Assembly: GCA_965240325.2 (NCBI GenBank)
Contig: OZ251224.1
Location: 2,046,001-2,110,000 of the forward strand
Direction of reading: 5' to 3'
Source of the DNA: Rebecca billardiae RCC1528
Taxonomy: Eukaryota; Protista; Haptophyta
Length of the DNA stretch: 64,000 bases
In this document: piece after piece, positions 3,564 through 48,304 of the stretch
Position numbering within the stretch: the first letter of the stretch is position 1
Layout of the letters: every line of letters begins with the position of its first letter
Position numbers and translations under genes: made by a program
Notes under the pieces: model-generated
The model's input: only the letters and a program-made list of their open reading frames with translations
Databases searched by the model: none
Told to the model about the DNA's origin: nothing

Positions 3564-3828
3564 GGCCCGACGCCCGCGTAGCGACGGTCGTCCTGTGCGG
3601 CGTCTGCGCAAGGTTGCTCCGGCCGTCCTGCCATCTCGCATCGCCTTCGCGCGTGGTGTCGTACTCGTAGTAACTAGTGGCAAGGTCACGCCCAACGCCA
3701 ACGGGCCAACGGTGGCGTGATGGTTTCGTCTGTCTCGAGCGAAGGCTTCCGCTGCTGACAATGTGAAGCAGACTGCGCTGGTTCCGACTTCCGAGGGCTG
3801 GTTGGTTCCGAGGGCAACCTGGTTGAGC

Positions 3829-4908: not shown

Positions 4909-4931
4909 GTTGAGCGGCTGTCTTGAAATTC

Positions 4932-9272: not shown

Positions 9273-9400
9273 TGGCCCGCGGTCGTGCAGGGCGGAGCGC
9301 GTAGCGTGGAGCCCGCGCCGGGGGGCCTCAATACGTTGTCCAAAAGATCACTTATGGCCAGCGGTGCAGGGCGGAGCGCGCAGCGTGTCAGAGCGCCCAC
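9273..9400 (+). mobile_element. Truncated tandem 5'-end fragments of the asymmetric-end element family
   Basis: ttATGGCCCGCGG..TGCAGGGCGGAGCGCGTAGCGTGGAGCCC...AAAAGATC, then a second ttATGGCCAGCGGTGCAGGGCGGAGCGCG at ~9354. No 3' hairpin end found. Confidence 0.7.
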
Positions 9401-15982: not shown

Positions 15983-16607
15983 CTAGTCGTAGCAACGAGC
16001 GACAGCCGCGCCGGTGACTGTCGTCTCCTTGTGCCTCGCCTCCTTTATTGTGCCACGCCTGCTCTTCCGTCATCAGCCTTTATCTAGCGGCAGTGATATA
16101 GTATGTGGCAGGCCGGGTGAGCGTGGCGTTACGGTTAGGACCGTCAGTCTGTCAGACCGTGTCCGTGAGACGGTAAGACTACGTCTGTCTGGTTACGGCG
16201 CGCTGCGACGGCGTTCCGATATTGTTATTCTGAAAGCGCCAGCGGCGTACATGCGAAGTCTTCCGCCGAAGTGCGACTGACACTGCTAAGACAATAGACA
16301 TCGTACAGTAAGCCCGCCCGCCCGCGCAGCAAGTATAAACAAGGCGGGCCCGGCGGAACCTGGACCCGGGGCAGTCGTCTTTGATGGGCGCCCCCGGCCC
16401 CGAGTGATGGCACTCTCGAGACCGCGGCGCCTGGGCACCGTGGCAGTGGCCCATCATCGAGAAATATTCGAGTGGCAGCACGGAGGTCTGCCACGCTGTC
16501 AGACAGCAGTCCCGGTGTCGTGTCGTCGTCAGCAACAGACAGCTTCAGCAGGCGGAAGTTACTGCCCGGAAGTCATCGCTCGGCGTCAGCATGCCAGCGA
16601 TCTGATA

Positions 16608-18209
16608 TGACCGCGTTCCGCGGTCCTTTTCCGTAGAACGAACGTAGTTCAGGGCCCGCGGTGGCGGTGCACCCTCCGTCGCAGTCGTCTATTGACAGAC
16701 CAGTTGCATATGCCCGTACAACTAGACTCCAGCGGCGCGCCGCCGCCCGCCGCGCCGGGCGGGCCCATTGCAGCCGCCGGCGCGGCGCCGATTGTGTACA
16801 GGCGGATGCGACGAGGCGTGATCGACGCATGAGCGCGACTCCACGTGCACACCAGGCCACGCGGAGCTGACAGCCAGGGAGCACGGTGCGGGGCCGCGGA
16901 TTCGTTCGGGCCGCTGCTGCTGACCGCTGTCCCCGGGGTCACCCCCCGCGCCGGCAGCGCCCGGGATGATGCACTGGTCCGAGTAGGGTTCGACCAGCGC
17001 CTGCGCGACGGCCGACAGGCGGGCGCGAGGCGTGATCGACGCATGAGCGCAACTCTACGTGCACGCCAGGCCACGCGGAGCTGACAGCCCGATGGAGCAC
17101 GGTGCCGAGGTGCGAGGGCACCGGTGATCCGGTTCGCGCACTCGCCGCGCGTGCACGGGCAGCTGACACACCTCGATCAGGCTCGGCACGCGTTGCAGAG
17201 GCACGGCCAGCTCTGGGGACGTCACGCACCACCGTCGCCCGCGCAGCTCGTCCTCCTCGTAGAGTACCGTTCAGTTCCGAGGCGTAGCCCTCGCTCAGAG
17301 TCGACCGACGATGGACTCGGATCGTCGGCGCGCCTGCTCTCTCTCAATCAAGAAGAGTTCTGGGAGACCCCGGAAAGGCATGGCAAGGGCGGCGCGTGGT
17401 GAAGTCGAAGGCTCAGAGATCGATCAGTCCGGCATCAGGCGCCGCTGCCCCCGAGCTTGCGAGAGCCCGAACACAGGGCGGCGGCTGCGGCGCCGGCTCG
17501 CGGACGCGCCGGGGCCGCGCAAGGCCGCGCCGAGGCATCGACAGGGCGGCAGGGGCGGCGGGGGCGCGCGGAGTGAGCGGGGGCACGACGAACGCGATGT
17601 CGACGGCAGTCGGGACCCGCCGCAGCCGCGCGCTCCAGGCGCCATTCGCCGCGCGCACCTGCCCATCGCCGTCCTCACCCGTCGGTCGCTCGTGAGCCTC
17701 GTGCCCGTGGCTCGCCTCCAAACGCAGGCCGCCTCTGGTGGGCCGCCGCCCGGGGCCGCGCGCGGCCGCGCGCGCCCAACCAAGTCCGTTCGCGTCAGAT
17801 AGTATTGAGATATACGCCGAGCTTGGGCCCTCTGCTACTGACCCTTGCCTTGTCGGCTCCTGATACAGATAGGGCGCGATTGAATAGTTGATCAACTGAT
17901 TCAATGGACGTACATTGTCACATCGGTTCGCGGCAATCTCACTATCAAACTAAATCGCTCGTAACGAACCGTTACGTTAATGTCACGGCCGCTCACGTCC
18001 CGTCCATCGATTGAATAGGGGAATGTCGTGGACGCGGTTATTTCTCCGTAATGCATGTGTAGAGAGGGTCTCAAAAATCGAAACTCGGTCACCGCCAGCC
18101 CTAAAAATCGCCCCCGTCCCTTTTTTCTTGATCAAAGATCTTTTTGAAACGTGGTTAGGGCCCACGGAGCGGGCTCCACGCTGCGCGTTCCGCCCTGCAC
18201 CGCGGGCCA
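16608..18209 (-). mobile_element. Asymmetric-end non-autonomous element, copy A (~1.6 kb)
   Basis: On the minus strand it begins tcA|TGGCCCGCGGTGCAGGGCGG and ends CACCGCGGGCC...AAAAGGACCGCGGAACGCGGTCA|T. Its 3' ~1.1 kb is homologous to copy E; its 5' module is homologous to copies C and D. Confidence 0.88.
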
Positions 18210-18464: not shown

Positions 18465-20323
18465 TGGCCCGCGGTGTAGGGCGGAGCGCGTAGCGTGGAG
18501 CCCCGCCGGGGGCCCTCACTACGTTCAACGTTGTCAAAAAGATCTTTTGATCAAAGAAAAGGGGACGGGGGACGATTTTGAGGGCGGCTGTCGGAGGGTG
18601 AGTTTTCGCTTTTTTGAGGGGTACCTTGGCCCATTGCTCTGCATTAGCCCGAGACGCATTGACGAAATAGCCGCGCCCACTCCAATTCCGTATCTACGGA
18701 CGGACGTGAGTAATACGCAACCGCTGGACGTGCCTTTGTCAGTATATCTGGGTAGTGAACGAATATCTAGCTGCGATTTGTTGTAAATATTCATACGGAA
18801 CAAAACTTGGTCGCCAGCCCGGGACCAACCGGACCCAGGGCCGGACGTGTTTTTAAAAGTGCATGTGCACGGGGGTCCTACAGTAGCAGGGTATTCTACC
18901 AAGGGGGTTCCCGTTCAATCTTCCGACGATACGGTTGAACGTGCATGGTCGTAAATGGACATGGTTCCCGCGGAAGCCACTAGCTACAGTAGAGGGCGCA
19001 CTGCAGATGAAAAGATGATCACTCCGTACCCCCGTAAGGGCGCACTGCAGATGAAAAGATGATCACTCCGTACCCCCATAGTAGGGTATTCGTGATACGA
19101 ATACAGCACGCAGACGAAATTGCACTTGGGGCAAGGCCCTTGACGACTCGCGCCGGTGACGCCGGCGCGACCGCGACGCGTGGAACTGCGGAGCCCTTGA
19201 CTCGGACCGCCGGGACCGCGTGCGTGCGCGTGCCGCCGCAGTACGCCGCGGTGCGCGAGGTGGTGGCGGGGGCCGGCCGGCCGCTGCCTCTCGCCCTCGC
19301 ACTCTGCTCTCCCCGAGCGCGCCTGTCGCCTCGCAGGCCCCGCGTCTACTCCGTCTCGCCCGGCCCTCGCACTCCGCTCTCACCGAGCGCGCCCACCGGT
19401 CCGTGTCGTCTCGCCGGGCCGCGTGGCCGAGTCACGCCGAGTCGGCGCGCGCCCAACAACCTACCCGCAGGCGCGTTCGTCGCTCGAGGAGGAGCGAAGG
19501 GCGAGCCGAGTCCGGAGCACTACGCGAGCTCGTCGCTTGAGGAATGAGGACGGGAGCGTGCCGCGACGGCACGCCGCAGCGGAGATGAGCCGGAGTGCCG
19601 CCCGGAGCTAGTAGTGCGGCTGAAGGGCGAGCTCGAGCTCGCGAGCTCGCTCCTCGACGCCGAGCGCGAGCTCCTCCTCAACTCGGTCGTCGACCGCGCC
19701 GGAGGTGCAGCAGCAGCAACTCGGCGAGCACGCACGGCCACGGGCTGCCGATTTGTCACGGCCTGCCGCGCTGGCCGCCGCCGCTGCGTGCCTGCGTGGC
19801 TTCGAGGCCGACGCCGGCGGACGAGGAGGCGGCGGGCGAGCACGGCGCGGCGCGGTGGAGCAGGCGCGCACGCGCGGCGGCAGGCGCGACGCGCCGCTCG
19901 CCTCGTTCCACTCCGAGCTCCGCTCGGTCTCGCCTCTGGCGATCGGTGCGCGGCTGCGCAGCGCACCGGGGCCGCGGGGCCAGCAGTGCCCGCTGGCCGA
20001 GTGGCGCGCGCTCTCGCTCTGCCCGGGCACGAAGCGCGCCGGCTGAGCGACCAGCGGCCCGTCGTCGAGCGCATGGCGCAGCGCGAGCACCTCAAGCAGG
20101 TGCGCCCGCACGCCCGCCCGCGCCGGCCCGCGCCGCGCGGCGCCTCTCGCCCTGCGCGCGCGCGCCGCCCCGGCGGCCGCGCTTCCCGCCGCGCGGCCCG
20201 CGGCGACAGTCCTCGGCCCGCCATGTTAGTCAGAGTGTCAGACTGATCGACAGCAGCCGACGGAGGTTGCACCGCGGGCCCCTAACTACGTTGGTTCTAC
20301 GGAAGGACCGCGGAACGCGGTCC
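18465..20323 (+). mobile_element. Asymmetric-end non-autonomous element, copy B (~1.86 kb, unique interior)
   Basis: 5' tgA|TGGCCCGCGGTGTAGGGCGGAGCGCG...CAAAAAGATCTTTTGATC. 3' TGCACCGCGGGCCC...GGACCGCGGAACGCGGTC. Internal ~40-bp tandem duplication at ~18992-19077. Confidence 0.85.
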
Positions 20324-20419
20324 TATCCATGACGATCATGCAGACGAATTACACTATATATATGGATGAGGCGTTCGGCGGCCGTTCGGCAGTCAGGGGG
20401 CGCCGGGGCCGGCATTTAA

Positions 20420-26202: not shown

Positions 26203-27540
26203 TGGTCAGCCCGCGGTGCAGGGCGGAGCGCGCTAAGCGTGGAGCCCGCAGTGCGGGCCCGAACCACGTTTCAAAAAGATCTTTGATCAAATAAGAAAAA
26301 AGGGCCCGGGGCCGGGGCGATTTTCAGGGAGGTGGAGACCGAGTTTCGATTTTTTGAGACCGCATAGAGATTAGAGACCAAGGGCCTTGTAGAGACGTTC
26401 ATTCGGCGAGAAAAGACCGTGCCCACGATATTCCCTAAGTAAAGTGCGATCTGCGTGTGAGCCGGACGTGACTTTAACGTAACGGTTCGTTACGAGCGAA
26501 TCGTATTCGTCGTCCCGGATCGCGTGACTGACGTCCGGACTGGCCACATCCGGATCGGAGCGGTGACGTGCCCGGCGCACGATGGCGGATGGGACCAACC
26601 CCTGGCTGCCAGCGCGCCTGCACGTGCCTCCGGACCCGCCTCCGCTTGCTGCTCACGCAGTCAGCTGCGACCGTGGCGCATGATCGCAGAAGCAGTGCCG
26701 GCAGTACGGCCTGCATCAGCTAGTGCCGCGCCGTCGTGGCGCGCGCGGTAGTTGCGTTTGCAGGCGGCTCGCCGCTCGGCGACGGCACGCGCGTGCGGCT
26801 CAGGAGTCAGGTGTGTCAAATGCGGTCTCGTCGGCGCGCTTTCGCCTGCCACCTCGTGCACCCGTGCCGCCAGCTTCATCGTCTTCATGAGGACTGCTGC
26901 TGCTGTCGCCATCCGCTCTCCATCACCCCGAGTCGCGCGGCGCGCGCAGTAGCAGGGCGTACGGTCACTCCGCCCCCGTGCAACGGGTCAAGTGGCCAGA
27001 GTACGTCTGGTCGTCGTTGGCTGGCACGGGCCGCAGCGCTAAAGCACCCTGCTGTCACACCCGACTCCTTCAGTACTCCGAGCTCCGCGGCACGACTCAC
27101 TCGGCACGATCGCGGACGGGTCGGATCCGTCGATCCGAGCTGATCAGCCATCTGGAGTTGGACAGTTTGGCAGCTAGTAAAAGTTGTCAGACGGACGTCC
27201 GATGCCGATGGCACGATGGCGGACGGGTCGGATCCGAGCTGATCAGCCAGTTGGACATTTGGCATCAGCTAGTTGTCAGACGGACGTCCGATTTGACGGG
27301 TGCCGGGCCCGGGTGCGGTCTCAGGTCCGCTCCTGTGATTGTGTGAAGTGTGAATGAGTCTCGCGGGATCGCAGGCAGGGCGACGGTCGGACTATTAGTT
27401 CTAAGACTGTACTCTTCAGTCATCTCAGAACCGACTTCAACTGGCGAACTGCCACTACGGCAGAGAGCCACGATTGCACGGCCACCGCGTGCCCCCAACT
27501 GCGTTGATTCTATGCAGAAAAGGACCGCGGAACGCGGTCA
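26203..27540 (+). mobile_element. Asymmetric-end non-autonomous element, copy C (~1.34 kb)
   Basis: 5' tggtcaGCCCGCGGTGCAGGGCGGAGCGCG (extreme end degenerate)...AAAAAGATCTTTGATC. 3' AAAAGGACCGCGGAACGCGGTCA|T. Colinear with copy D. Confidence 0.85.
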
Positions 27541-27576
27541 TCTAATAAGCGCTGTAGCAGTAGCATGTATACATAG

Positions 27577-30500
27577 TGTTGTATTAATCCCGAATTTCCT
27601 CCGTGCACGATTTCTTTTCCTTTCCAGGCGCTTGGATCCAACCGCCAGGAGAGGTCGAGTCCCAGGTACTACTCGCTGTCGTACCTGCCCTCCCTGTGAA
27701 CCAGCGCGAGCGCGCTCGGCCCCTAATCCTATTGCTTTCGCCGCTGCCCGCAGGCGAACGCAAGCCGCCGGTTACGTATATACGTTTTCCCCCGGCGCTA
27801 TTGGTCTAACGACCGGCCTATCAGTTTACTGGTGGCCGCCGTTTGCCCTTGACGTTGACTTGTGACCCGTGTGGGACGACTCCCGCACCGCCCGCTCGTC
27901 CGCACGGACGACGCTGCTGACGACGTCCGCAGGGACACTGTGATAAGCCCCTGCGTGACCGGGGAACTGGTAAGGCGGAATAAACATCATGAGCTCACGC
28001 GTGTGAACCCACGTACCACCGGGCATGGCCCACCCAACCGGTCGCAGCGTCGCGGGTGTCGCGACGAACGCGCGGGCAATGATGCTCGCGTGCAGCGCGC
28101 TCTGCATTGAGCAGCCGAGTGAAAGCGCGCAGACGAACCAGATGCCCACGCACGGCGTGGTGTACGAGTTCGGTGACTACCAGAAGGACATCCGTTACGC
28201 AACCTCGAATGTCCTCCGCCTGCAGGGCGGCTGCACGCGCGGTACGAACCGCGCGAGCATTGACGTGCCCGCGTGTGGCACGACTTGCGGTGACGACACC
28301 GCGGCGGGGGCCTGGATGGTCCTCGTGATCGACAACGTCGAGCACGAGCTCGATGATGATGGGAAAGGAGACGATCCATACCCTTCACGGCATCCGCTGA
28401 GGCCGATGCTGCGAGCGCCCCGAACATCCTCACGAGAGGACAGCTGGACTGGGCGCGAGGTGCTGCTCGATGACGGGCAGCAGCAGGTGATACACTCAAA
28501 GGACGTGTACATCATTGATGAGCGGTCGCTGGTCGAGGGGAGGCACACTCCGTTCGCGACCAGCGATGACAGTGCCGAGCCCGAGACTGAGCTGGGAGAC
28601 GCCGCTGACGGCGAGCTCACCGGCGAGGGCGACGAGCATTTTGAGATTGAGGACGGCGCGGCCGATGACGGCGGCGCTGCTGCTCATGACGACGGTGGCG
28701 CGGCGAGCGAAGCTGCGCGACCGAGCGCCGACGGCGATGACGCCGGAGGCGATGACGACGCACGAGCTGGTGAGTCCGCGGCGCCCGAGCTGCCGCGCGA
28801 CTACGACCCGATGCGACGAGACCGAGCGAGGCGGAGCAGACCCGCCGCGCAGACGGTGCAGGCTGTGACCGAGGCAGCGTTCCAGGCCGCGGGCGAGGAA
28901 CCTACCAAGGAGAACAGCTTCGAGGCATTCGCTGCGACGACGATCGCGCGGATGAATGGTGTGCCGATCACCATCCCCACGACGTGGGACGAGGCGATGA
29001 AGTCGCCCGAGGCCAAGTTCTGGATGCAGGCCTGCCACGACCACCTCGACGCGCACGGCGTGAGACACACGTTCTTCGAGGTGATTGTGCCGGACAACAC
29101 GAGGACGATTCCTGTCAAGTGGGTGTTCGACGTGAAGACGCTTCCCGATGGCGAAGTGATCAAGTTCAAGGCGCGGCTGGTAACCCAGGGGTTCCGCCAG
29201 CGCGAGGGCATCGACTTCAATGAGGTGTTCGCCCCGACGATACGACCAGAACAGCTGCGGCTGATGCTCGCGGTCGCGCTCAAGGCCAAAGGCGTCTCGA
29301 TGACGGACGCGGCGAGCGCCAAGATCGTGGAGATGCGACCCGCCGACGTGCGGCACGCATACCTGAACAGCGACCTGCCGGAGGGCGAGGAGGTGATGAC
29401 ACCGCTCCCGCCTGGCTACACCCCGAAGAGCTCGACGCCGCTCGGCTCGAAGGTGGTCGCGAAGTTTGTGAAGGCGCTCCCAGGCATGCGCCAGGCCGGG
29501 CGCGTGTGGTACCTACACTTGCGTAAGTGTTTGCTCGAACATGGGTTCGAGCCGTGCCCGAGCGCGCCGTGCATCTACTCGAAGGCAGTCGATGGCGGCT
29601 ACGTGTTCGTCGGTCACTTTGTCGACGATCTGCTGATGATGAACATCTCGAAGGACAAGAACGCGTTGGACGCGCTGATGACGGCGTTGCTGACGCACTA
29701 CGAGATGCAGGGCGCGGACTGCCTGAGCAAGTTCCTTGGCGCCGAATTTGAGACCACGGTGGACGGACTTTTTACCCACCTGAACCAGTACACCGGTGAT
29801 GTGTGCGAGCGCTTCCACCTGAGTGGAGAGCGCCACCCACCGACCCCCGAGTGCAGCGAGACGCGCGAGATCCCCCGCCCGCTGCAAGCCCTCCTGCTGC
29901 GCGCTGACCGCCAGCACTACCAGGAGATGACCGGTGCCCTCATGTACTGCATGACGACGTGTCGCCCCGACATCGCACACGCTGTGAACATGCTGGCACG
30001 CCGGATGTCCAATCCCCGGCTCTACGACTTGACCGCCGCGAAGCGCACGCTCCGATACTTGCTCGGCACGCGTCGGCGCGGCATCCTCTTCCGGCACGCG
30101 ACGCACGCACAACACCCTGATTTGGTGGCGTACGCGGACTCGGACTGGGCGAACGATCGTGAAGATCGACGTTCTACGACGGGATACCTTGTTATGTACA
30201 ACGGGGTTCCGATCTCGTGGCACAGCGGACTGCAGAGCGTGGTCGCGTTGTCTACGTGCGAGGCGGAGTACATCGCGCTGAGCGAGTGCTGCCGCGAGGT
30301 GATCTACCTGCGCGACCTGGTCACGTTTTTGAACGAGCCGGTCGTGGAGCCCACGACGGTGATCTACGAGGATAACCAGGGCACGATCGATTTGACGAAC
30401 AACCCGGTGCACCACAAGCGCACCAAGCACATTGACGTGAAGTACCATTTCACGCGGCGCGCGCAAGCCGACGGCGCCGTGCTGATCCAGAAGGTGTCGA

Positions 30501-31037
30501 CCGACGACAACCGGTCCGACATCATGACCAAGGCTACCGCGACGAGTACTTTTCTCAAGCACGTCGTGGCGATACTGCATGCTGTTCCACCACCTCCGCC
30601 GCCTTCGGCATGATGTCGAGGGGGGGTGTTGTATTAATCCCGAATTTCCTCCGTGCACGATTTCTTTTCCTTTCCAGGCGCTTGGATCCAACCGCCAGGA
30701 GAGGTCGAGTCCCAGGTACTACTCGCTGTCGTACCTGCCCTCCCTGAACCAGCGCGAGCGCGCTCGGCCCCTAATCCTATTGCTTTCGCCGCTGCCCGCA
30801 GGCGAACGCAAGCCGCCGGTTACGTATATACGTTTTCCCCCGGCGCTATTGGTCTAACGACCGGCCTATCAGTTTACTGGTGGCCGCCGTTTGCCCTTGA
30901 CGTTGACTTGTGACCCGTGTCGGACGACTCCCGCACCGCCCGCTCGTCCGCACGGACGACGCTGCTGACGACGTCCGCAGGGACACTGTGATAAGCCCCT
31001 GCGTGACCGGGGAACTGGTAAGGCGGAATAAACATCA
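27577..31037 (+). mobile_element. Ty1/Copia LTR retrotransposon, internally deleted (RT-RNaseH only)
   Basis: LTRs 27577-27989 and 30627-31037 (TG...CA; differ by a 2-bp indel and 1 substitution seen). 5-bp TSD CATAG on both sides. PPT GAGGGGGGG at 30618-30626. Confidence 0.95.
28025..30613 (+). CDS. Copia pol remnant: integrase C-terminal tail, reverse transcriptase, RNase H
   Basis: VIHSKDVYIIDE, KWVFDVK, FKARLVTQGFRQREGIDF, HFVDDLL, CRPDIAHAV, YADSDWA, STCEAEY, YEDNQG, KHIDVKYHF, DIMTK. Confidence 0.93.
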   Translation: MAHPTGRSVAGVATNARAMMLACSALCIEQPSESAQTNQMPTHGVVYEFGDYQKDIRYATSNVLRLQGGCTRGTNRASIDVPACGTTCGDDTAAGAWMVLVIDNVEHELDDDGKGDDPYPSRHPLRPMLRAPRTSSREDSWTGREVLLDDGQQQVIHSKDVYIIDERSLVEGRHTPFATSDDSAEPETELGDAADGELTGEGDEHFEIEDGAADDGGAAAHDDGGAASEAARPSADGDDAGGDDDARAGESAAPELPRDYDPMRRDRARRSRPAAQTVQAVTEAAFQAAGEEPTKENSFEAFAATTIARMNGVPITIPTTWDEAMKSPEAKFWMQACHDHLDAHGVRHTFFEVIVPDNTRTIPVKWVFDVKTLPDGEVIKFKARLVTQGFRQREGIDFNEVFAPTIRPEQLRLMLAVALKAKGVSMTDAASAKIVEMRPADVRHAYLNSDLPEGEEVMTPLPPGYTPKSSTPLGSKVVAKFVKALPGMRQAGRVWYLHLRKCLLEHGFEPCPSAPCIYSKAVDGGYVFVGHFVDDLLMMNISKDKNALDALMTALLTHYEMQGADCLSKFLGAEFETTVDGLFTHLNQYTGDVCERFHLSGERHPPTPECSETREIPRPLQALLLRADRQHYQEMTGALMYCMTTCRPDIAHAVNMLARRMSNPRLYDLTAAKRTLRYLLGTRRRGILFRHATHAQHPDLVAYADSDWANDREDRRSTTGYLVMYNGVPISWHSGLQSVVALSTCEAEYIALSECCREVIYLRDLVTFLNEPVVEPTTVIYEDNQGTIDLTNNPVHHKRTKHIDVKYHFTRRAQADGAVLIQKVSTDDNRSDIMTKATATSTFLKHVVAILHAVPPPPPPSA

Positions 31038-31071
31038 CATAGTCAGTTAGTAAACTCGACTCGGTATTAAT

Positions 31072-31293
<222 letters not shown>

Positions 31294-31498
31294 TGCGTAT
31301 TCACAGACTGATTCACAGTACGACGCAGAATCACTGATCACTAATAAATTATAAGCCAGTGACCGTTGCCCGTTCAAAGTATAGCAATCAGAAAGTGGCC
31401 ATCAAACTGTCACCGCCAGCGCGGCAGTGAGGAAGCATTTGATCGGACAACAACTGAGGATATGGGTGCATCGGTCCTGGACCGTAGTCTGAATGTCG

Positions 31499-36828: not shown

Positions 36829-39680
36829 TGGCCCGCGCGGTGCAGGGCGGCAGTCAGAGCGCGCAGCGTGGAGCCCGCACCAGCGGGCCCGAACCACGTT
36901 TAAAAAAGATCTTTGATCATCAAGAAAAAAGGGACGGGGGGCGGCGGAAAAAAAGGGACGGGGGCGATTTTTAGGGCTGGCGGAGACCGAGTTTCGAGTT
37001 TTTGAGATCGCATTGAGAGGTCTATCAGGCCAAAAAAAACCGCTGCCCAGCTGATTCCCTTAAGTAAAGTGCGATCTGGACGTCAGCTGGACGTGACATT
37101 AGTGTAACGGTTCGTTACGAGCGAATCGTACTCGTCTTCCCGGATCGCGTTGTCAGACTGGGCACCAGTCCTCGAAGACACCGTTCCACAGGAGTCGCGG
37201 GTAAGTTTCCGCATCTACCCGCACGTACCGGCGGAGGCACGATCCGGCACTATCTCGGCCAGTCCGGAGCCCCAAACTGCTCCCTGGGAGTTTGGGGCTG
37301 CCTGACCCATCATCCGATGATGTGACCCCGTCCGCCTGCCCCTTCGGGGCCGGTCCTTAGCCCGCCTGGTCGCTTCCGGTGGACCTATCGCCCACACGCG
37401 CGGTAGGGAGCACCCACGCTTCTTCTTCAGTCTAACATGGTATCGGCGGTCAGCAACGAGACGCGCTCGTTACCGGACCCGACCTCGCTGGCGCAAGGAA
37501 CGCGCTCGCGCGCATCGCGCGTTGCGAGCTCGCGAGACGATTCACATCCAAGTCGGATGGTCCAAGGCAGGCTAGCCCAACCGCGGCAGCCTTCAAGGAG
37601 GAGGTGCTGACGTACCTCATTCCGACGACATTCGCGTCGTCATCGTGCGCCGAGTCGCACGCCCTGCTCAGATGCAGGAGGAGTCTCGACACCAAGTCGA
37701 TTGACTTCATGAATGCAGCCCTCGACCGCCAAGATGGCCGAGCAGCTTGCAAGGAGGAGATGAGGCGCGATCTACGCGTTCACTAGGCGACAGCGGGTAC
37801 GATCACGTCGATCGACACCGCGCGCCGCTCGATCATCTCCGCGCTCGCTATGTGCAGCTTCTTCGTGACACACGGTTGCGAGGCAGCGTCATTCTGCGGC
37901 CGAAGCCGACACAAGGTTCTACGCGTGAGACCAGTCCATGTCCCATTGCACCAGCCCACACGCGGTGGTGCACCGTCGCCGTCGACGCGACCCATCGAGG
38001 AGGAGCAGGCAGGTGGATCTCGGTAAGTCCACAGCAGCTGGCACGACCACACGATCACTCGATCAACTGCCTGGGGCACCACGCCCCCGTCGACGCCCAA
38101 GCCGAGCCCGAGCCTGGTCAGCCAGCTCGGCAGGCGTCCATTCACTGGAGTACGACTGCTCGGACGGATTCGCGAGCAACTCCAGACGTCCCTCGATCGC
38201 TGCTGCGATTCGCAGCTTCCGGACAGCTTGGCAGCTAAACAGTCGGGCACGCACACGCGCGCTCGCCTTACGCCCCCACTCACACTTACGCACACGCGCA
38301 CGCGCACTCAGGCACCGCACCTCGCTGTGGTCGGTGAGGAGGAGTGTCAGACTGGGCACCAGTCCTCGAAGACACCGTTCCACAGGAGTCGCGGGTAAGT
38401 TTCCGCATCTACCCGCACGTACCGGCGGAGGCACGATCCGGCACTATCTCGGCCAGTCCGGAGCCCCAAACTGCTCCCTGGGAGTTTGGGGCTGCCTGAC
38501 CCATCATCCGATGATGTGACCCCGTCCGCCTGCCCCTTCGGGGCCGGTCCTTAGCCCGCCTGGTCGCTTCCGGTGGACCTATCGCCCACACGCGCGGTAG
38601 GGAGCACCCACGCTTCTTCTTCAGTCTAACACGCGTGACGTCCGGACTGGGCCACATCCGGATCGTCGGAGGTGACGTGCCCCGGCGATGGCGGATATGC
38701 GGGACGGCGCCTGCACGTGCCTCCGGACCCGCCTCCCGCTTGCTGCTCACGCAGTCAGCTGCGACCGTGGCGCATGATCGCAGAAGCAGTGCCGGCAGTA
38801 CGGCCTGCATCAGCTAGTGCCGCGCCGTCGTGGCGCGCGCGGTACGGTTGCGCGTTTGCAGCGCTCGCCGCTCGGCGACGGCACGCGCGTGCGGCTCAGG
38901 TGTGTCAAATGCGGTCTCGTCGGCGCGCTTTCGCCTGCCACCTCGTGCACCCGTGCCGCCAGTTTCATCGTCTTCATGAGCACTGCTGCTGCTGTCGCCA
39001 TCCGCTCTCCATCACCCCGAGTCGCCGAGTCGCGCGGCGCGCGCGGTAGGCACTAGGCAGGGCGTACGGTCACTCACCCGTGCAACGGGTCAAGTGGCCA
39101 GAGTACGTCTGGTCGTTGGCTGGCACGGGCCGCAGCGCTAAAGCACCCTGCTGTCACACCCGACTCCTTCAGTACTCCGAGCTCCGCGGCACGACGACTC
39201 ACTCGGCACGATCGCGGACGCACCCTGCTGTCACACCCTCGACTCCTTCAGTACTCCGAGCTCCGCGGCACGACTCACTCGGCACGATCGCGGACGGGTC
39301 GGATCCGAGCTGATCAGCCAGAGTTGGACACAGTTTGGCAGCTACTAGTAGTAATTCCGATGCCGATGGCACGATCGCGGACGGGTCGGATCCGAGCTGA
39401 TCAGCCAGTTGGACATTTGGCAGCTAGTTGTCAGACGGACGTCCGATTTGACGACCGGTGCCGGGTGCGGTCTCAGGTCCGCTGCTGTGATTGTGTGAAG
39501 TGTGAATGAGTCTCGCGGTCGCGCAGGCAGGGCGACGGTCGGACTAATAGCTTCAGTCATCTCAGAACCGACTTCAACTGGCGAACTGCCACTACGGCGG
39601 AGAGCCGCGATTGCACGGCCACCGCGGGCCCCCAACTGCGTTGATTCTATGCAGAAAAGGACCGCCGCGGAACGCGGTCA
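36829..39680 (+). mobile_element. Asymmetric-end non-autonomous element, copy D (interrupted by a TRIM)
   Basis: 5' ttA|TGGCCCGCGCGGTGCAGGGCGG. 3' CACCGCGGGCCC...AAAAGGACCGCCGCGGAACGCGGTCA|T. Matches copy C once 37151-38636 is removed. Internal ~77-bp tandem duplication at ~39144-39297. Confidence 0.88.
37151..38631 (+). mobile_element. TRIM / small non-autonomous LTR retrotransposon
   Basis: 287-bp LTRs at 37151-37437 and 38345-38631 (TGTCAGACTG...CAGTCTAACA, no differences seen). PBS TGGTATC right after LTR1, PPT GAGGAGGAG before LTR2. 5-bp TSD CGCGT, present once at the homologous site in copy C. Confidence 0.93.
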
Positions 39681-39857
39681 TATATACGCTGACACTTAGA
39701 ACTCAGTCACGCACTGACTCACTGACGCACTACGCAGTCACGCCGGCGCCGACACTGCTCACACTAAGGTTCCACACGACACTCGACACCGAGCGACTGT
39801 GCCACGACGACCCCGAGCACACTCTGCGAACGTGAGATCGATTGGAACGAGACGGGC

Positions 39858-41405: not shown

Positions 41406-43166
41406 ATGGCGAAGGCGGCCAAGTTGCCCCTGCCGGGGCCACAGGCGAAGGACACGGCTACGGCCGGCGGTCGGCGATTTCGGCCGTACCTCGCGTTGGG
41501 ATCGTTGATCGTGTTGGTCCAGCTCCATCACCTCGTGCGCACATGGATGGTGCTGAGCGTGAGTCACACGGGGGGTGGCGTCGACGCAGTGCGGCGTGAG
41601 CTGCTCAGGCGGGCATGGCTGCCGCGCGCGTGGGCTGGCAGCGAGGAGGATGGCCCAGAGGACGAGGTCGAGCGCGCGGCTTGGAGACGCGTTGACCAGC
41701 TGGCTGCGCTCCTGGTCGGCGGTGCTGGCGCTGCCCGCGATGACACGACTTCTGCTGCGGTGCCGGGCGAGGGCACGCAGGCCGACGATGCGCGTTCCCA
41801 GCACGCCGATGAGAGCGAGGGCGCGGGCGCGGTCGTGGATGGAGAGGGCGAGGACGGCGAGGGCACGGGCGACGCCGATGCGGAGGCCGAGGAGGACGAG
41901 GCCAAGATGGACTCGCTCGTGCGCAGCATGGAGGGCTCTGCCGGCGCGGCCGCGGCCGCGGAGGACGAGGAGGAGGAGGAGAAGAAGGGCGGCGCAGAGG
42001 AGCTGGGCGGCGTGTCGATCACGCTCGTGTCGCAGACGAGCGAGGAGCGCGTGTGGATGATCGAGCACATGTGCGACCGGTGGCCCGGCGCGCTCGCCAT
42101 CGCCGTCCACGTGCGCGGAGACCCGCACAAAGTGATGGGCACGCACCGGCGCGTCGAGAAGTTTGGCGCGTGCTTCACCGACGGCGAGATGCGGCTGGCG
42201 CTCGAGGTGATCCACGCGCGGAAGGAGGAGCCGTACCCGATCAACAAGCTGCGCAACCTGGCGATCGCGCGCGTCTCCACCACCCACTTCCTCATCGTCG
42301 ACATCGACCTCTGGCCGTCCGCCGAGCTGTACAACGTGCTGATGTACGCGATGGCGCACGACACGCCCGTCGACGTGGACACGACCGACGGCGCGGGCAG
42401 GTCGGGCAGCGGCGGGGCGGAGGCCGAGCGCGAGCTGTCGCTCAAGTCCTCGCGGCTCGCGATCGTCACGCCTGCGTTCGAGATCTCCGGCTCGGCCTTC
42501 AACCTTCAGGGCCAGGCGCTCGCGCCGAAGGTGCCGCGCACGTTTGCGCAGCTGCAGGAGTGCCACAGCAAGGGCAACTGCCACGTGTTCAAGAAGACGA
42601 CGCACACGCACCGCTCGACGGACTACGCGCGTTGGTGGGACAACACGGACGTGGGCGCGTATCACATCAAATGCTTCGACTCGATTCGCTACGAGCCGTA
42701 CGTCGTCGTGCCGGTGAGTTGCCCTCGGCGCGAGCGCACGCGACTGCGAGCGCGTGTGCGCGCGACCGAGTGTGAGCGCGCGCGGCGGACAGCCCCAACT
42801 GATCAATCGCGTTGCCTGCCCACACGCCACCCGTGCTCGCCCCGCGCACGACAGACGGACCAGGCGACCACCCCTCGGTTTGACGAGCGCTTCAGCGGCT
42901 ATGGCAAGAATAAGATCGAGTTCATCCAACACCTGCGCATGGCTGGCTTCCGATTTGCTGTGATCGCGCGAGGCTTTGTCGTGCACGTCGCACACGAGAA
43001 GTCGCGGGCGTACCGCGCGTGGCTGGAGACGAAGGGCGCCAAGCGCGCGAAAACGAACGACATCTTCAATCAATTCATCTCGGAGCACATGCCCTCCGCG
43101 AGGATCGCGACGCCCCTGTGCAAGCAGGCCTTCAGCCATCAGGCAGCAATCATGATGGGTCAATGA
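41406..43166 (+). CDS. GT49 glycosyltransferase (LARGE/B4GAT1-like), type II membrane; intron ~42714-42854
   Basis: N-terminal TM and acidic stem, then ITLVSQ, YPINKLRNLA, FLIVDID (DxD), YEPYVV, FDERFSGYGKNK, FVVHVAH. Confidence 0.88.
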   Translation: MAKAAKLPLPGPQAKDTATAGGRRFRPYLALGSLIVLVQLHHLVRTWMVLSVSHTGGGVDAVRRELLRRAWLPRAWAGSEEDGPEDEVERAAWRRVDQLAALLVGGAGAARDDTTSAAVPGEGTQADDARSQHADESEGAGAVVDGEGEDGEGTGDADAEAEEDEAKMDSLVRSMEGSAGAAAAAEDEEEEEKKGGAEELGGVSITLVSQTSEERVWMIEHMCDRWPGALAIAVHVRGDPHKVMGTHRRVEKFGACFTDGEMRLALEVIHARKEEPYPINKLRNLAIARVSTTHFLIVDIDLWPSAELYNVLMYAMAHDTPVDVDTTDGAGRSGSGGAEAERELSLKSSRLAIVTPAFEISGSAFNLQGQALAPKVPRTFAQLQECHSKGNCHVFKKTTHTHRSTDYARWWDNTDVGAYHIKCFDSIRYEPYVVVPVSCPRRERTRLRARVRATECERARRTAPTDQSRCLPTRHPCSPRARQTDQATTPRFDERFSGYGKNKIEFIQHLRMAGFRFAVIARGFVVHVAHEKSRAYRAWLETKGAKRAKTNDIFNQFISEHMPSARIATPLCKQAFSHQAAIMMGQ

Positions 43167-43857
43167 TGCATAGCTATATCGTCTTAGTATCGCGACGATG
43201 ATGAGTCTCACTCATGAGTGAGCTAGATGACTGTATTTATAATCATTTATCTGTTGATAGTCACGCCGGGCCTACAGTCTGGGTGCTGGTCGATGCTTGA
43301 CGATCATTGAGGCAGCTTGGCTGGGTAGTTGTTCACAACACTCAGTAGTGACTAGTGACTCACCAGTGATAGGGGCCGCATAGGGCGGCGACAACTCATC
43401 CGCCTCATTATTTAAAATATATTAAATGTATTAAGGAGCTACTCGGCGGAGCTAAATTGCTTAGTGATATATTTAACGACGTGGCAGCATCGGATAAGCG
43501 TCAGGCTAATGCTACTTCGTCGGGGATAATTAAGAGCACGCAAGCTGGACCGCGGCGTGTGGTTGATGACCGAGTCTCCGTTTTTAGTTACAGCCGCCAT
43601 GACGCGACAAGGGCTTATTGGGTATCTCCAATTTGAGCGGGCCCGCGAGTTGCCAAGATGCGTAGGAATGATTCGTCGTCTACCCCACTTTTTGAGTGCT
43701 CCAAGCGCTCTTGAGCCCGATCTGAGTCGATCTCCACTCTATCCTACCGCGGCGAAGGTTGGCGACGTCGCATCATCAACCGAAGAGCGCGCCGAAGCCG
43801 AACTGCGAAAACAACATCCGCTGAAGGAGGAGGCGGGCGCGAGATCGGTGCGGGTCA

Positions 43858-44598
43858 ATGCCACATCCCGACGACCACGAGTGGAGCGCAACGCCGACGG
43901 ACGAGATGGACGAAGGCGACGAGGGTGGCCTCCAGGACGGACACCACGCGAACGACGAAGGTGAATCGCCAGCGGCTAACACCAGCCAGCCTGAGCAGAC
44001 CATCCAGCAGCTGCAGGACGGCAATGCCGAGTGTGCGCGCGATAACGCGCCCGCAACAAGCTTGGATGAAGACGGCTCACACGGCCTGGGGGTGGAGGTG
44101 AGTACCGAGGCGGGTACCATGCCGGCACTGGCGCCTGCTGCGAACGCCTCCCCGCAAGGAGCAGACCGAGACGACGAGGAGGCCACGCCCGCGGAAACAC
44201 CAGCAGCCGAGCAGCACGCGCAGCCCGGCGGCGGGAGCAGCGACGACGCGCCGGAGCAGGAGCAGGTGTGGTGGCGTGGGACGGTCCCGAAGACATCACG
44301 CTTCCTCGGCGTCTCAAGATACAAGGGCAAGTGGCGCTCGTTCATCTGCGCGCACGGCCGATGCAAGGAGCTGGGCAAGTTCGAGAGCGAGGTCGCGGCC
44401 GCGGAGGCGTACGATCGCATGGCGTTCTGGCTCCGGCTCGACCGCAAGCTCAACTTCCCAGTGCCTGGATCAGGCTTCACTCCGCTCAGCGAGGAGGAGC
44501 TGGCTTTCGCCAATCCAAGCCGCCCATTCACGAGCACTGAGGGCCGGGACAAGCGCCAGGCCTTCAGCCATCAGGCAGCAATCATGATGGGTCAATGA
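43858..44598 (+). CDS. Truncated chimeric AP2/ERF-domain protein (one AP2 domain; tail from the GT49 gene)
   Basis: TSRFLGVSRYKGKWRSFI...LGKFESEVAAAEAYD...LNFP. Ends QAFSHQAAIMMGQ*, identical to the GT49 C-terminus. Confidence 0.72.
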   Translation: MPHPDDHEWSATPTDEMDEGDEGGLQDGHHANDEGESPAANTSQPEQTIQQLQDGNAECARDNAPATSLDEDGSHGLGVEVSTEAGTMPALAPAANASPQGADRDDEEATPAETPAAEQHAQPGGGSSDDAPEQEQVWWRGTVPKTSRFLGVSRYKGKWRSFICAHGRCKELGKFESEVAAAEAYDRMAFWLRLDRKLNFPVPGSGFTPLSEEELAFANPSRPFTSTEGRDKRQAFSHQAAIMMGQ

Positions 44599-44663
44599 TG
44601 TAGCTATATCGTCTTAGTAGTTAGTATCGACGATGATGAGTGAGATGACTGTATTTATACTCA

Positions 44664-45993
44664 TGGCCCGCGGTGCAGGGCGGAGCGCGCAGCGTGGAGC
44701 CCGCTCCGTGGGCCCTAACCACGTTTCAAAATAAGATCTTTGATCAAAGAAAAAAGGGACTGGGCGGTGTTTTCCAGAGTGGAGGAGACCGAGTTTCGAT
44801 TTTTTGAGACCTCCTTACGCATGGATTAGCGTCGAAAAAGGGCGCGTCCGCCGTCTTGAATAGTGAACAGAGGAATCAACGAAACCCACGCCCAAGTGTG
44901 CCAGGCTGGGTAATTGTGGGTAGACTCTCGTTCATCAAGTGTAGTGCGCCGCCGCAAGATGCCAAGAACGACCGTTGACATAATAGTCCAACCAACTCCA
45001 ATAGTGCGAGACATCCGCCGCAGCTATCCGTATCGCGCTCGGCGTGTCCGCCGCGTTTTGTACGCCAGTCAGTTGCGACTTGCGAGAGGCAAGACGAGGG
45101 GGCGAGCCACGAGCGACCGACTCGTCGCACTCGCGAGGGGACGGGGTGAGGACGGCGATGGCCCCGCGATGGGAGGTACGCGCGGCGAGTGGCGCCTGGT
45201 GCGCGCGGCTGCGGCGGGTCCCGACTGACGGGCGACATCGAGTTCGTGCCCCGCTCACCCCGCGCGCCCCCGCCGCCCCGTGTCGACTGCCTGCGCGTCC
45301 GCCGCGCGTCGGGCCGGCGCCTGCGCCGCGGCAGCCGCCCTTTATTCGGGCTCTCGCAAGCTCGGGGGCAGCGGCGCCAGCCGGCGCCTGATGCCGGACT
45401 GATCGATCTCTGAGTCTTTGACTTCACCACGCGCCGCCCTTGCCATGCCTGGTGCCCTCGCACCTCGGCACCGTGCTCCCTCGGGCTGACAGCACCGCCG
45501 ACCGCGTGGCCTGGCGTGCACGTAGAGTTGCGCTCATGCGTCGATCACGCCTCGCGCCCGCCTGTCGGCCGTCGCGCAGGCGCTGGTCGAACCCTACTCG
45601 GACCAGTGCAAATCATCTAACTATCCTGGCGCTGCCGGTGCGCGGTGACCCGCGGGACAGCGGTCAGTCAGCAGCAGCGGCCCGAACGAATCCGCGGCCC
45701 CGCACCGTGCTCCCTGGCTGTCAGCTTCGCGTGGCCTGGCGTGCACGTGGAGTCGCGCTCATGCGTCGATCACGCCTCGTCGCATCCGCCTGTACACAAT
45801 CGGCGCCGCGCCGGCGGCTGCGAAGTGCGATGGGCCCGCGCCCGGCGCGGCGGGCGGCGGCGCGCCGCTGGAGTCTAGTTGTACGGGCATGCAACTCCGG
45901 GTCTGTCAATAGACGACTGCGATGGAGGGTGCACCGCCACCGCGGGCCCTGAACTACGTTCGTTCTACGGAAAAGGACCGCGGAACGCGGTCA
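44664..45993 (+). mobile_element. Asymmetric-end non-autonomous element, copy E (1330 bp)
   Basis: tcA|TGGCCCGCGGTGCAGGG...GGACCGCGGAACGCGGTCA|Tttatctgttg. The paralogous empty site at ~43242-43256 reads atcatttatctgttg. Confidence 0.92.
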
Positions 45994-46549
45994 TTTATCT
46001 GTTGATAGTCACGCCGGGCCTACAGTCTGGGTGCTGGTCGATGCTTGACGATCATTGAGGCAGCTTGGCTGGGTAGTTGCATTCACCACACTCACAAGTG
46101 ATAGGGGCATAGGGCGGCGACAACTCATCCGCCTCATTATTTAAAATATATTAAATGTATTAAGGAGCTACTCGGCGGAGCTAAACTGCTTAGTGATATA
46201 TAATGCTACTTCGTCATGGGTAATTAAGAGCACGCAAGCTGGACGCGGCGCGTGGTTGATGACCGATTCTCCGTTTTTAGTTACGGCCGCCATGACGACA
46301 AGGGCTAATTGGGCATCTCCAATTTGAGCGGGCCCGCGAGTTGCCAACATGCGTAGGAATGATTCGTCGTCTATCCCACTTTTTGAGTGCTCCAAGCGCT
46401 CTTGAGCCCCGATCTGAGTCGATCTCCACTCTATCCTACCGCGGCGAAGGTTGGCGACGTCGCATCATCAACCGAAGAGCGCGCCGAAGCCGAACTGCGA
46501 AAACAACATCCGCTGAAGGAGGAGGCGGGCGCGAGATCGGTGCGGGTCA

Positions 46550-48304
46550 ATGCCACATCCCGACGACCACGAGTGGAGCGCAACGCCGACGGACGAGATG
46601 GACGAAGGCGACGAGGGTGGCCTCCAGGACGGACACCACGCGAACGACGAAGGTGAATCGCCAGCGGCTAACACCAGCCAGCCTGAGCAGACCATCCAGC
46701 AGCTGCAGGACGGCAATGCCGAGTGTGCGCGCGATAACGCGCCCGCAACAAGCTTGGATGAAGACGGCTCACACGGCCTGGGGGTGGAGGTGAGTACCGA
46801 GGCGGGTACCGCGCCGGCACTGGCGCCTGCTGCGAACGCCTCCCCGCAAGGAGCAGACCGAGACGACGAGGAGGCCACGCCCGCGGAAACACCAGCAGCC
46901 GAGCAGCACGCGCAGCCCGGCGGCGGGAGCAGCGACGACGCGCCGAAGCAGGAGCAGGTGTGGTGGCGTGGGACGGTCCCGAAGACATCACGCTTCATCG
47001 GCGTCTCAAGATACCAGGGCAAGTGGCGCTCGTTCATCAACGTGCATGGCCGAGGCATGGAGCTGGGCAAGTTCGAGAGCGAGGTCACGGCAGCGGAGGC
47101 GTACGATCGCTGGGCGTACTATCTCGACCGCAAGCTCAACTTCCCAGAGCCGGGATCAGGCTTCACTCCGCTCAGCGAGGAGGAGCTGGCTTTGGCCAAT
47201 CCAAGCCGCCCATTCACGAGCACCGATGGCCGGGACAAGCGCCTGCGTGACCCCGCTTCGTGCAAGCGGCCCGAGAGGATGGCCGACCTCAGCTTCGGAG
47301 GGTCCTTGCACATGCCGCCGGCCAAGCGGGCGCGCCGTGCTGCAGCCGAGGGCGGCGAGGAGCAGGAGAGTGTGGCCGGGACCGGCCGCGGGCCGGCGGA
47401 AGCAGTGAGTGGTGCTCCAGAAGTCATCACAATCGACGGCGGCGACGACGGTGACGGTGCGGAGCAGACATCGCGCGCGCGCGCTGCTCGTGGCGCGCGC
47501 CCCAAGGCCAAGCAACCTTCGCCGTCGCCGCCGCAGAGAGCCCCCCCCACGTCGAAGTACAACGGCGTGTCGAAGAGCGGCGGCATGGCGCGCCCTTGGC
47601 AGGCACGCATCCAGAACGAGTCGCTTGGTGCGTTCGACAGCGAGCTGGAGGCGGCGAAAGCTTACGACGCCGCCGCCAGCCTGCCTCGGCGCCGCGTGCT
47701 GTTTGCTTGCAAGCTCAACCGCGACAAGTTTCCGGAAGATTTTGACCATCAGCGCGAGGCGCGGCGCCCGGACAGCCGCACCATGCACACACCGGCAGTG
47801 CCACCGCCCCAAACGGACGCGCAGGCCCCCGCAGCTCCGGCAGACGCCACGCTCCACGCCGGTGACGCGCCCATGTTCTCTGCACCCCGACCGGCGGCTG
47901 CGGACGAGGTGCAGTGCCCGGTCGGCGGTGCGACCACAACGATGCCAAACGCAAACACCGCGCAGCCACCGCACACGGCCACGGCGGCGCCCCAGACCGA
48001 CGATACGCCGCCGCCCGCTGCCGCACCACCGGCGATGCCGCCCACCGCCTCCGAGGCACCCGCCGCAGGCGCGAGCGCCGCGCCCAATTCCACCGCACAG
48101 GCCGCATCGTCACGCGCTGCTCCAACGCCTGCCGCTCCCAGCGCCGGCGACGGCCGCGGCGCCAACGTCAACGTGGATGCAGCCAAGACACCCGCGGAGA
48201 CTCTCGTGGCTGGCATGACGCTCATCAACGACATGGCACACCAGGACCCGAGCCTACGCGATCTCGTACGCCCAGTCATCGAGCAGCTCCTTGCGCAGAA
48301 ATAG
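46550..48304 (+). CDS. AP2/ERF transcription factor with two AP2 domains
   Basis: TSRFIGVSRYQGKWRSFI...LGKFESEVTAAEAYD...LNFP and TSKYNGVS...PWQARIQNESLGAFDSELEAAKAYD...KLN. NLS-like PPAKRARR. Confidence 0.88.
   Translation: MPHPDDHEWSATPTDEMDEGDEGGLQDGHHANDEGESPAANTSQPEQTIQQLQDGNAECARDNAPATSLDEDGSHGLGVEVSTEAGTAPALAPAANASPQGADRDDEEATPAETPAAEQHAQPGGGSSDDAPKQEQVWWRGTVPKTSRFIGVSRYQGKWRSFINVHGRGMELGKFESEVTAAEAYDRWAYYLDRKLNFPEPGSGFTPLSEEELALANPSRPFTSTDGRDKRLRDPASCKRPERMADLSFGGSLHMPPAKRARRAAAEGGEEQESVAGTGRGPAEAVSGAPEVITIDGGDDGDGAEQTSRARAARGARPKAKQPSPSPPQRAPPTSKYNGVSKSGGMARPWQARIQNESLGAFDSELEAAKAYDAAASLPRRRVLFACKLNRDKFPEDFDHQREARRPDSRTMHTPAVPPPQTDAQAPAAPADATLHAGDAPMFSAPRPAAADEVQCPVGGATTTMPNANTAQPPHTATAAPQTDDTPPPAAAPPAMPPTASEAPAAGASAAPNSTAQAASSRAAPTPAAPSAGDGRGANVNVDAAKTPAETLVAGMTLINDMAHQDPSLRDLVRPVIEQLLAQK

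Follow-up and report, generated by a model that had tools for sequence, protein, structure and literature searches.

A stretch of 64,000 nucleotides from the haptophyte alga Rebecca billardiae RCC1528 (contig OZ251224.1, positions 2,046,001 to 2,110,000; hereafter the window) carries several copies of a transposable element with the ends GGCCC...GGTCAT that belongs to a family of ca. 1,000 copies in the 72-Mb genome, many of them 96-100% identical at their ends. With a probability of roughly three in four, these are young, high-copy, non-autonomous rolling-circle transposons of the Helitron2 type (HLE2) that insert after the tetranucleotide TNAT and themselves end in one. They form a new family within this known type, with a TNAT rule already published for relatives in Fusarium, and reveal no new kind of mobile element. 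The copies directly display the ends of the element, the logo of its target, insertion in a single orientation and without target duplication, a mosaic cargo and exact tandem junctions.

The unit of insertion can be read from a segment of the window that holds the 3′ part of one gene plus an AP2-domain gene and occurs twice in tandem; one half (43120-44555) is empty and the other (44556-47243) carries an element copy that we call copy F. Alignment of these two paralogous copies of one short AT-rich spot gives ...GTATTTATAATCAT|TTATCTGTTGATAG for the empty half and ...GTATTTATACTCAT|GGCCCGCGG...CGCGGTCAT|TTATCTGTTGATAG for the filled one. The inserted DNA amounts to exactly one 1,330-bp unit, which can be read as GGCCC...GGTCAT or in a register shifted cyclically by at most 4 bases, and not a single target base was duplicated: of the two TCATs bracketing the element, one is target and the other element. 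This bears out the original prediction, made from the letters of the window alone, that an empty and a filled insertion site both occur in it. When the joined flanks of 35 copies were searched against the collected DNA for further empty sites, only this known pair and one other flank-spanning match were found, and the latter (copy L028) also has C as its N and is thus without bearing on the choice between a TNAT and a strict TCAT target.

The six intact left ends in the window follow TTAT, TTAT, TCAT, TGAT, TTAT and TCAT, exactly as previously listed, and a seventh at 26207 is degenerate, while the right ends read GGTCAT in four cases and GGTCCT in one. Beyond the window, a 19-mer from the left end has 1,012 genomic matches and a 16-mer from the right end has 933 exact ones, with none for the reversed-pattern control. 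Flanks were sampled in genome order (100 left and 100 right, listed via a pattern ending in the three-base code H and tallied by hand), and a separate set of 57 non-redundant left flanks was compiled. The TNAT rule proposed for the window holds genome-wide, with 86/100 left flanks conforming (TTAT 43, TAAT 25, TCAT 10 and TGAT 8). By position, the genome-order sample has T at -4 in 93, A at -2 in 91 and T at -1 in 99 flanks, and the 57-flank set has 56/57, 54/57 and 57/57, respectively (binomial p 1e-27 to 1e-32 against a local background of ~28% T and ~27% A), with T 32, A 12, G 7 and C 6 at position -3. T at -4, whose lack of enrichment had been named among the refutations of the rule, is far above the ~28% expected locally.

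On the right, TCAT ends 95 of the 100 sampled copies and TCCT another 2. The flank beyond it had been described as unconserved, which does not hold: the base after TCAT is A in 63/95 and T in 25/95 (A or T in 88/95), and the next base is T in 54/95. Both biases are significant (p 6e-8 at +1 and 2e-6 at +2) in a set of 36 sites that is unbiased for the right flank; an earlier right-end sample was set aside as biased because its query held three flank bases. Right flanks start with ATAT in 13/36 sites, 7 of which extend as ATATATAT or longer, and only 4/100 left flanks read ATAT. Of the proposed one-sided rule, the imbalance stands, with ~1.5-1.7 bits per position at -4, -2 and -1 versus 0.55-0.65 bits at +1 and +2, and the exclusiveness falls; the target rule is strongly asymmetric, yet not strictly one-sided. 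The downstream preference for A or T may reflect a need for easily melted DNA.

Which of the two tetranucleotides belongs to the element follows from their inheritance. In a tree built from the first 220 nt of 56 copies, near-identical sisters carry all four bases at N (one clade comprises TAAT, TGAT, TTAT and TCAT), so N does not descend with the element and the left TNAT counts as flank. In the right TCAT, the C never varies, whereas the left N is C in only ~11% of copies, from which it follows that the right tetranucleotide is inherited and thus encoded by the element, as had been proposed. An inherited right TCAT together with a free left N excludes a 4-bp duplication. The mirror reading, in which the left TNAT would be part of the element and a strict TCAT the target on its 3′ side, was rejected on the same grounds, as N is not inherited.

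Across 35 paired copies, the only recurring flank is the AT expected from the target preference, plus one 10-bp case. The latter is a 6.07-kb copy (L061, C1:3902000-3908300) with the 10-bp direct repeat ACTACTTAGT abutting both of its ends, which may be a rare target duplication of variable length, as known from Chlamydomonas Helitron2, or a tandem repeat that pre-existed at the target; shuffled pairings gave a repeat of 9-10 bp in 9/200 trials. At the level of sequence, a cut at TNA^T (element TGG...TCA, inserted between A and T) and one at TNAT^ (element GGCC...TCAT) are indistinguishable because the flanking T is invariant on both sides and both registers imply the same empty site.

The architecture of the ends is that of the Helitron2 type. 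At the 5′ end, the element folds into a hairpin that extends from GGCCCGCGG to CCGTGGGCC and whose foot is formed by GGCCCGCGGTG, the 5′ arm of an asymmetric terminal inverted repeat. The exact reverse complement, CACCGCGGGCC, is subterminal: 46 nt separate it from the 3′ end, and a 3′ hairpin that stands 2 nt from the element end lies downstream of it. These are the features that define Helitron2: an asymmetric terminal inverted repeat with a subterminal 3′ arm upstream of the 3′ hairpin, a 5′ hairpin containing the 5′ repeat arm and a 3′ hairpin near the 3′ end; orientation-specific insertion without duplication, also typical of them, is seen at the empty/filled pair and in the 35 paired copies. 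The Helitron-like option of the original prediction fits these termini. Among 46 paired copies, 10 or 11 of the 11 positions are complementary between the arms, and the outer stem of the 5′ hairpin is retained in 15/16 diverged copies; the hairpins are supported by conservation and thermodynamics only.

Between these ends, there is little common ground. All that 12 full copies of 1.3-6.1 kb from across the subfamilies have in common are the outermost ~100-150 nt on the 5′ side and 85-200 nt on the 3′ side. Copies span sizes of 1.2 to 6 kb, and their interiors combine unrelated blocks in mosaic fashion, among them fragments of ubiquitin hydrolase (UCH, PF00443) that are probably captured pieces of host genes. 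One UCH fragment lies inside a copy (L064, 3119-4600), and another (L066, 4408-5205) lies outside a 3.66-kb unit, between a first right end at 3774 and a second one at 7440. Close head-to-tail junctions occur 14 times genome-wide and read exactly GGTCAT|GGCCC in 11/14; the other three have the spacers TAT, TATTAT or TACTATTAT, which places the downstream copy again after TTAT. A tail-to-tail pair was also seen (L079, C1:1175770-1182870, at ~3879-3900), reading GCGGTC-CGAT-GACCGC, with the two 3′ hairpins only 4 nt apart and one copy consequently without its terminal AT.

Helitron2 elements are defined by a 5′ arm located 0-2 bp from the end that forms a 5′ hairpin, a 3′ arm upstream of the 3′ hairpin and a 5′ T, and the Chlamydomonas families insert after TTTT, have their 3′ arm 20-30 from the end and show rare duplications of variable length (Bao and Jurka 2013, PMC3627910). 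The algal family shares both repeat arms and both hairpins with them, as well as a T at or next to the 5′ end, insertion without duplication after a T-rich tetranucleotide and the occasional longer direct repeat (here in L061), but differs in its TNAT|A/T site and in the 46 nt that separate the 3′ arm from the end. Closer still in target choice are the Helitron2-like FoHeli1 and FoHeli2 of Fusarium oxysporum, which insert between TNAT and A according to the text or T according to a figure legend, and whose authors state the same ambiguity of whether the boundary T is element or target (Chellapan et al. 2016, PMC5148889). Common to these and the algal family are the TNAT|A/T rule, the lack of duplication, hairpins at both ends (the 5′ one of FoHeli with a GAA loop) and an asymmetric inverted repeat whose 3′ arm stands off the end by 38-51 bp in FoHeli and by 46 nt here. 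The termini themselves are unrelated (TCAG...ATATTTT in FoHeli versus (T)GGCCC...GGTCAT here), FoHeli elements are autonomous, 5-6 kb long and present in tens to hundreds rather than ca. 1,000 gene-less copies, and only the algal family has a 3′ end that is itself a TNAT.

Canonical Helitrons (Helitron1) have the ends 5′-TC...CTRR-3′, insert in A^T and carry a single 3′ hairpin ~10 nt from the end. The algal elements resemble them in inserting between A and T if the TNA^T register is chosen, in their 3′ hairpin, in their heterogeneous captured cargo and in the absence of duplication. In that register, they differ by ends reading TG...CA, a hairpin foot only 1-2 nt from the end, and the presence of a 5′ hairpin and an asymmetric inverted repeat. 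With ends (T)GGCCC and GGTCA(T), two hairpins and this repeat, they do not belong among the canonical Helitrons. A scan of metagenomes with both end motifs gave no matches.

If the Helitron2 assignment is right, a Rep-helicase transposase of the HUH class, supplied in trans, would nick one strand at T-N-A-T in three substrates: the 5′ flank of the donor (TNAT|GGCCC), the element's 3′ end past its hairpin (GGTCAT|) and the target (TNAT|A/T). The displaced strand would be closed at TCAT-GGCC and joined to AT-rich DNA behind a TNAT, in a single orientation and with no target duplication, while both hairpins and the asymmetric inverted repeat would position the enzyme and mark the end of copying. 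Exact head-to-tail junctions could then arise by insertion at the TCAT of another copy or by read-through. As the simplest model, a single T-N-A-T nick specificity would account at once for the strict orientation, the lack of duplication, the element-encoded TCAT and the exact head-to-tail junctions. Of this scheme, the type of enzyme, the passage through a single strand and the precise phosphodiester that is cut are inferred from the DNA. The suggestion that the target mimics the element's own end is upheld insofar as TNAT recurs at the left flank of the donor, at the 3′ end (as TCAT) and in the target, and it loses the IS200/IS605, Replitron and Crypton labels that it came with; this reading and the Helitron-like one are two descriptions of one thing.

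The candidate enzyme class is encoded in the genome. Helitron_like_N domains occur at five loci (on C39, C7, C13, C23 and C33), and the one on C23 belongs to a Rep-helicase (RepHel) with Rep and PIF1 helicase in a frame of 3,519 aa; a search for the helicase turned up a further, broken copy on C3, and the C7 copy has no helicase. Just upstream of the C7 RepHel frame (L087, C7:289250-293249), two very young high-copy repeats of ~893 bp and ~675 bp cut into the frame, each with dozens of copies that are 98-100% identical; hits to other repeats drowned out the DNA searches made with the C7 flanks. As to genes within the family, the longest open frames of eight copies of 3.4-6 kb matched only UCH fragments in Pfam, and a tblastn search of RepHel pieces against the collected family DNA found no transposase, only one antisense RepHel fragment (L013, C14:2323999-2327092, at 1878-2662). 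The latter is a partly duplicated piece of ~785 nt, located 378 nt from the left end of the copy, that shares 89% identity with the giant RepHel's N-terminal coding region, and is captured or adjoining DNA rather than a transposase. The only genomic match to Viral_Rep (PF02407) is an endogenous, broken Rep fragment resembling those of CRESS-DNA viruses (L093, C33:807600-809200, frame 708-1592), with the motifs HLQGY, YCSK and Walker A GKTGKS, ~55% GC in a 66% GC genome and (TA)n tracts on either side; no family ends were found near it.

Several observations weigh against the Helitron2 assignment. The usual insertion site given for HLE2 elements is between T and T (PMC11417382), and here T|T accounts for 25/95 sites and T|A for 63/95. 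On both sides, the tetranucleotide shows slight variation at its A (91-95% on the left and 89-97% on the right), and near-identical siblings of a copy with the TCCT variant end in TCAT, which we cannot explain. Covariation was seen neither in the hairpins nor in the inverted repeat, whose arms show plain conservation. The giant RepHel family of C23 and C33 ends in ...CCTCAAC and has GC-rich flanks, and no autonomous copy with the ends of our family was found among the RepHel stretches read. Specifically, such ends were absent from ~16 kb around the C7 copy, from 7.3 kb that span the Rep-helicase part of the C23 copy and ~1.45 kb past its 3′ end (the 5′ side was not covered), and from the 3′ end of the C33 counterpart and both ends of the C39 frame, with only parts of these loci read. 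It is conceivable, if rather unlikely, that for all its ca. 1,000 young copies the family has no cognate RepHel with matching ends in this genome. It would then be moved by an undescribed HUH enzyme or by a RepHel with unrelated termini, for which recognition would need only the TNAT nick motif and generic hairpins. Either way, a single TNAT nick specificity would act on the flank of the donor, on the 3′ end or circle junction and on the target, which would provide a simple, testable model for Helitron2 transposition; to our knowledge, Helitron2 transposition has not been reconstituted biochemically, and only that of the Helitron1 element Helraiser has.

An enzyme of a different kind, such as a helicase-less HUH protein (a Replitron-type or other Y1 Rep, or a TnpA like that of IS200/IS605) that recognizes the hairpins and cuts at TNAT, appears improbable to us. 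IS200/IS605 elements (for example IS608) and IS91 are prokaryotic and use a small Y1 or Y2 transposase. Like our family, they insert in one orientation beside a tetranucleotide that resembles the cleavage site of the other end, have subterminal hairpins and make no duplication, and it is this mimicry of the element 3′ end by the target that speaks for such an enzyme, as does the lack of a RepHel element with the ends of our family among the stretches read. The algal genome, however, has no Y1_Tnp gene: PF01797 gave 0 matches in 72 Mb but matched in 6/14 control genomes. Replitron-like proteins have been reported from two haptophytes, but the defining features of Replitrons are short direct repeats at the termini and a Y1 Rep that lacks a helicase (PMC10288648), not an asymmetric inverted repeat and two hairpins. 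Here, the only repeated terminal motif is T-N-A-T with a left copy derived from the target, no Rep was found in the examined copies, and the one CRESS-type Rep match in the genome is the broken fragment between (TA)n tracts described above, which has no family ends nearby. The alternatives of the original prediction that named IS200/IS605, Replitrons and Cryptons draw no support from these data: there is no Y1_Tnp match, N is free and the ends are not direct repeats.

The AT found on both sides of nearly every copy might instead be the 2-bp target-site duplication of a cut-and-paste DDE transposon GGCCC...GGTC (ISL2EU-like), as had also been proposed, and the outermost GGCCCGCG is weakly alike to GACCGCG, the complement of the right end. 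We regard this as very improbable, since departures from AT in copies with both ends in hand never match between left and right (GT and AT in L061; AT and CT in L080, L004 and copy C of the window). The site is also not palindromic around AT, with T at -4 in 93% versus A in 34% and T in 57% at the mirror position, and this left-heavy logo, obtained from part of the comparison of flanks that had been suggested as a check, argues against a symmetric DDE enzyme. Moreover, the C before the right AT is invariant and the left N free, and one arm of the inverted repeat is terminal while the other lies 46 nt inside. Hardly any credence goes to a Crypton-like element whose tyrosine recombinase would exchange strands within a short identical core (TCAT) shared by circle and target. 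It would explain the lack of duplication and the 4-base motif common to target and element end, and a circle junction TCAT-GGCC is plausible. The crossover region of such recombinases normally needs identity, but position 2 of the motif is free (T 43, A 25, C 10 and G 8 of 86), no recombinase gene was found in the 12 full copies compared, and hairpins and an asymmetric repeat are not Crypton features. The earlier preference for a single-strand or recombinase mechanism over a DDE dimer is hence sustained in its first half, with the lack of duplication, the unmatched departures, the non-palindromic site and the asymmetric ends all favoring strand-specific HUH chemistry, while the recombinase gains no support from an N that is free where crossover would need identity.

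The copies in the window and the landmarks of copy F are compiled in the table below. Five further copies and two 5′ fragments were located by blastn with copy F. The first fragment (A1) is broken after 82 nt by the left end of the second (A2), which follows TTAT, and no right end was found for either within the window. The surrounding DNA comprises AP2-domain genes and numerous microsatellites in a eukaryotic assembly of 41 contigs and 66% GC. It also contains a perfect inverted repeat of 400 nt with a 282-nt spacer (3828-4227 / 4510-4909) and a pair of 100%-identical direct repeats ~3.05 kb apart (27576-27989 / 30626-31037) near long (CA)n/(GA)n tracts at 31064-31300.

Features of the transposon family in the window (positions in the 64,000-nt stretch)
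Feature	Position	Strand	Description	Basis
Tandem duplication	43120..47243	+	Gene 3′ end and AP2-domain gene	Repeat families D8/D19 and alignment
Empty target site	43243..43246	+	TCAT, then TTATCTG; insertion point between 43246 and 43247 (register GGCCC...TCAT)	Paralogue alignment and sequence
Left-flank tetranucleotide	44661..44664	+	TCAT, an instance of TNAT; target-derived	Sequence and alignment; N varies among near-identical copies
Copy F	44665..45994	+	1,330 bp, non-coding, GGCCCGCGG...CCGCGGAACGCGGTCAT	Sequence, blastn, alignment
5′ hairpin	44665..44714	+	GGCCCGCGG ... CCGTGGGCC, 50 nt	DNA fold, -19.6 kcal/mol, z -2.45
5′ arm of asymmetric terminal inverted repeat	44665..44675	+	GGCCCGCGGTG, 11 nt; forms foot of 5′ hairpin	Sequence
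3′ arm of asymmetric terminal inverted repeat	45938..45948	+	CACCGCGGGCC; ends 46 nt before 3′ end	Exact reverse complement of 44665-44675
3′ hairpin	45976..45992	+	GACCGCG-GAA-CGCGGTC, then AT; foot overlapped by terminal TCAT (45991-45994)	Sequence and fold
Copy B	16607..18208	-	1.6 kb; left flank TCAT; right end GGTCAT, then ATC	blastn and sequence
Copy C	18466..20324	+	1.86 kb; left flank TGAT; variant right end GGTCCT	blastn and sequence
Copy D	26207..27541	+	1.33 kb; degenerate 5′ end CAGCCCGCGG; right end GGTCAT, then CTA	blastn and sequence
Copy E	36830..39681	+	2.85 kb; left flank TTAT; right end GGTCAT, then ATA	blastn and sequence
5′ fragments A1 and A2	9274..9387	+	Starts at 9274 (A1) and 9356 (A2)	blastn and sequence

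Helitron2-type elements are much less studied than canonical Helitrons, and the ca. 1,000 copies of this family provide a clean natural data set for their target choice. With them, the TNAT|A/T rule known to date from Fusarium is found in an alga as well, and the finding that the element's own 3′ end obeys TNAT points to a single nick-site specificity, which would explain the exact head-to-tail junctions. Annotation software that expects T^T or A^T boundaries together with TC/CTRR ends would misplace this family or overlook it.

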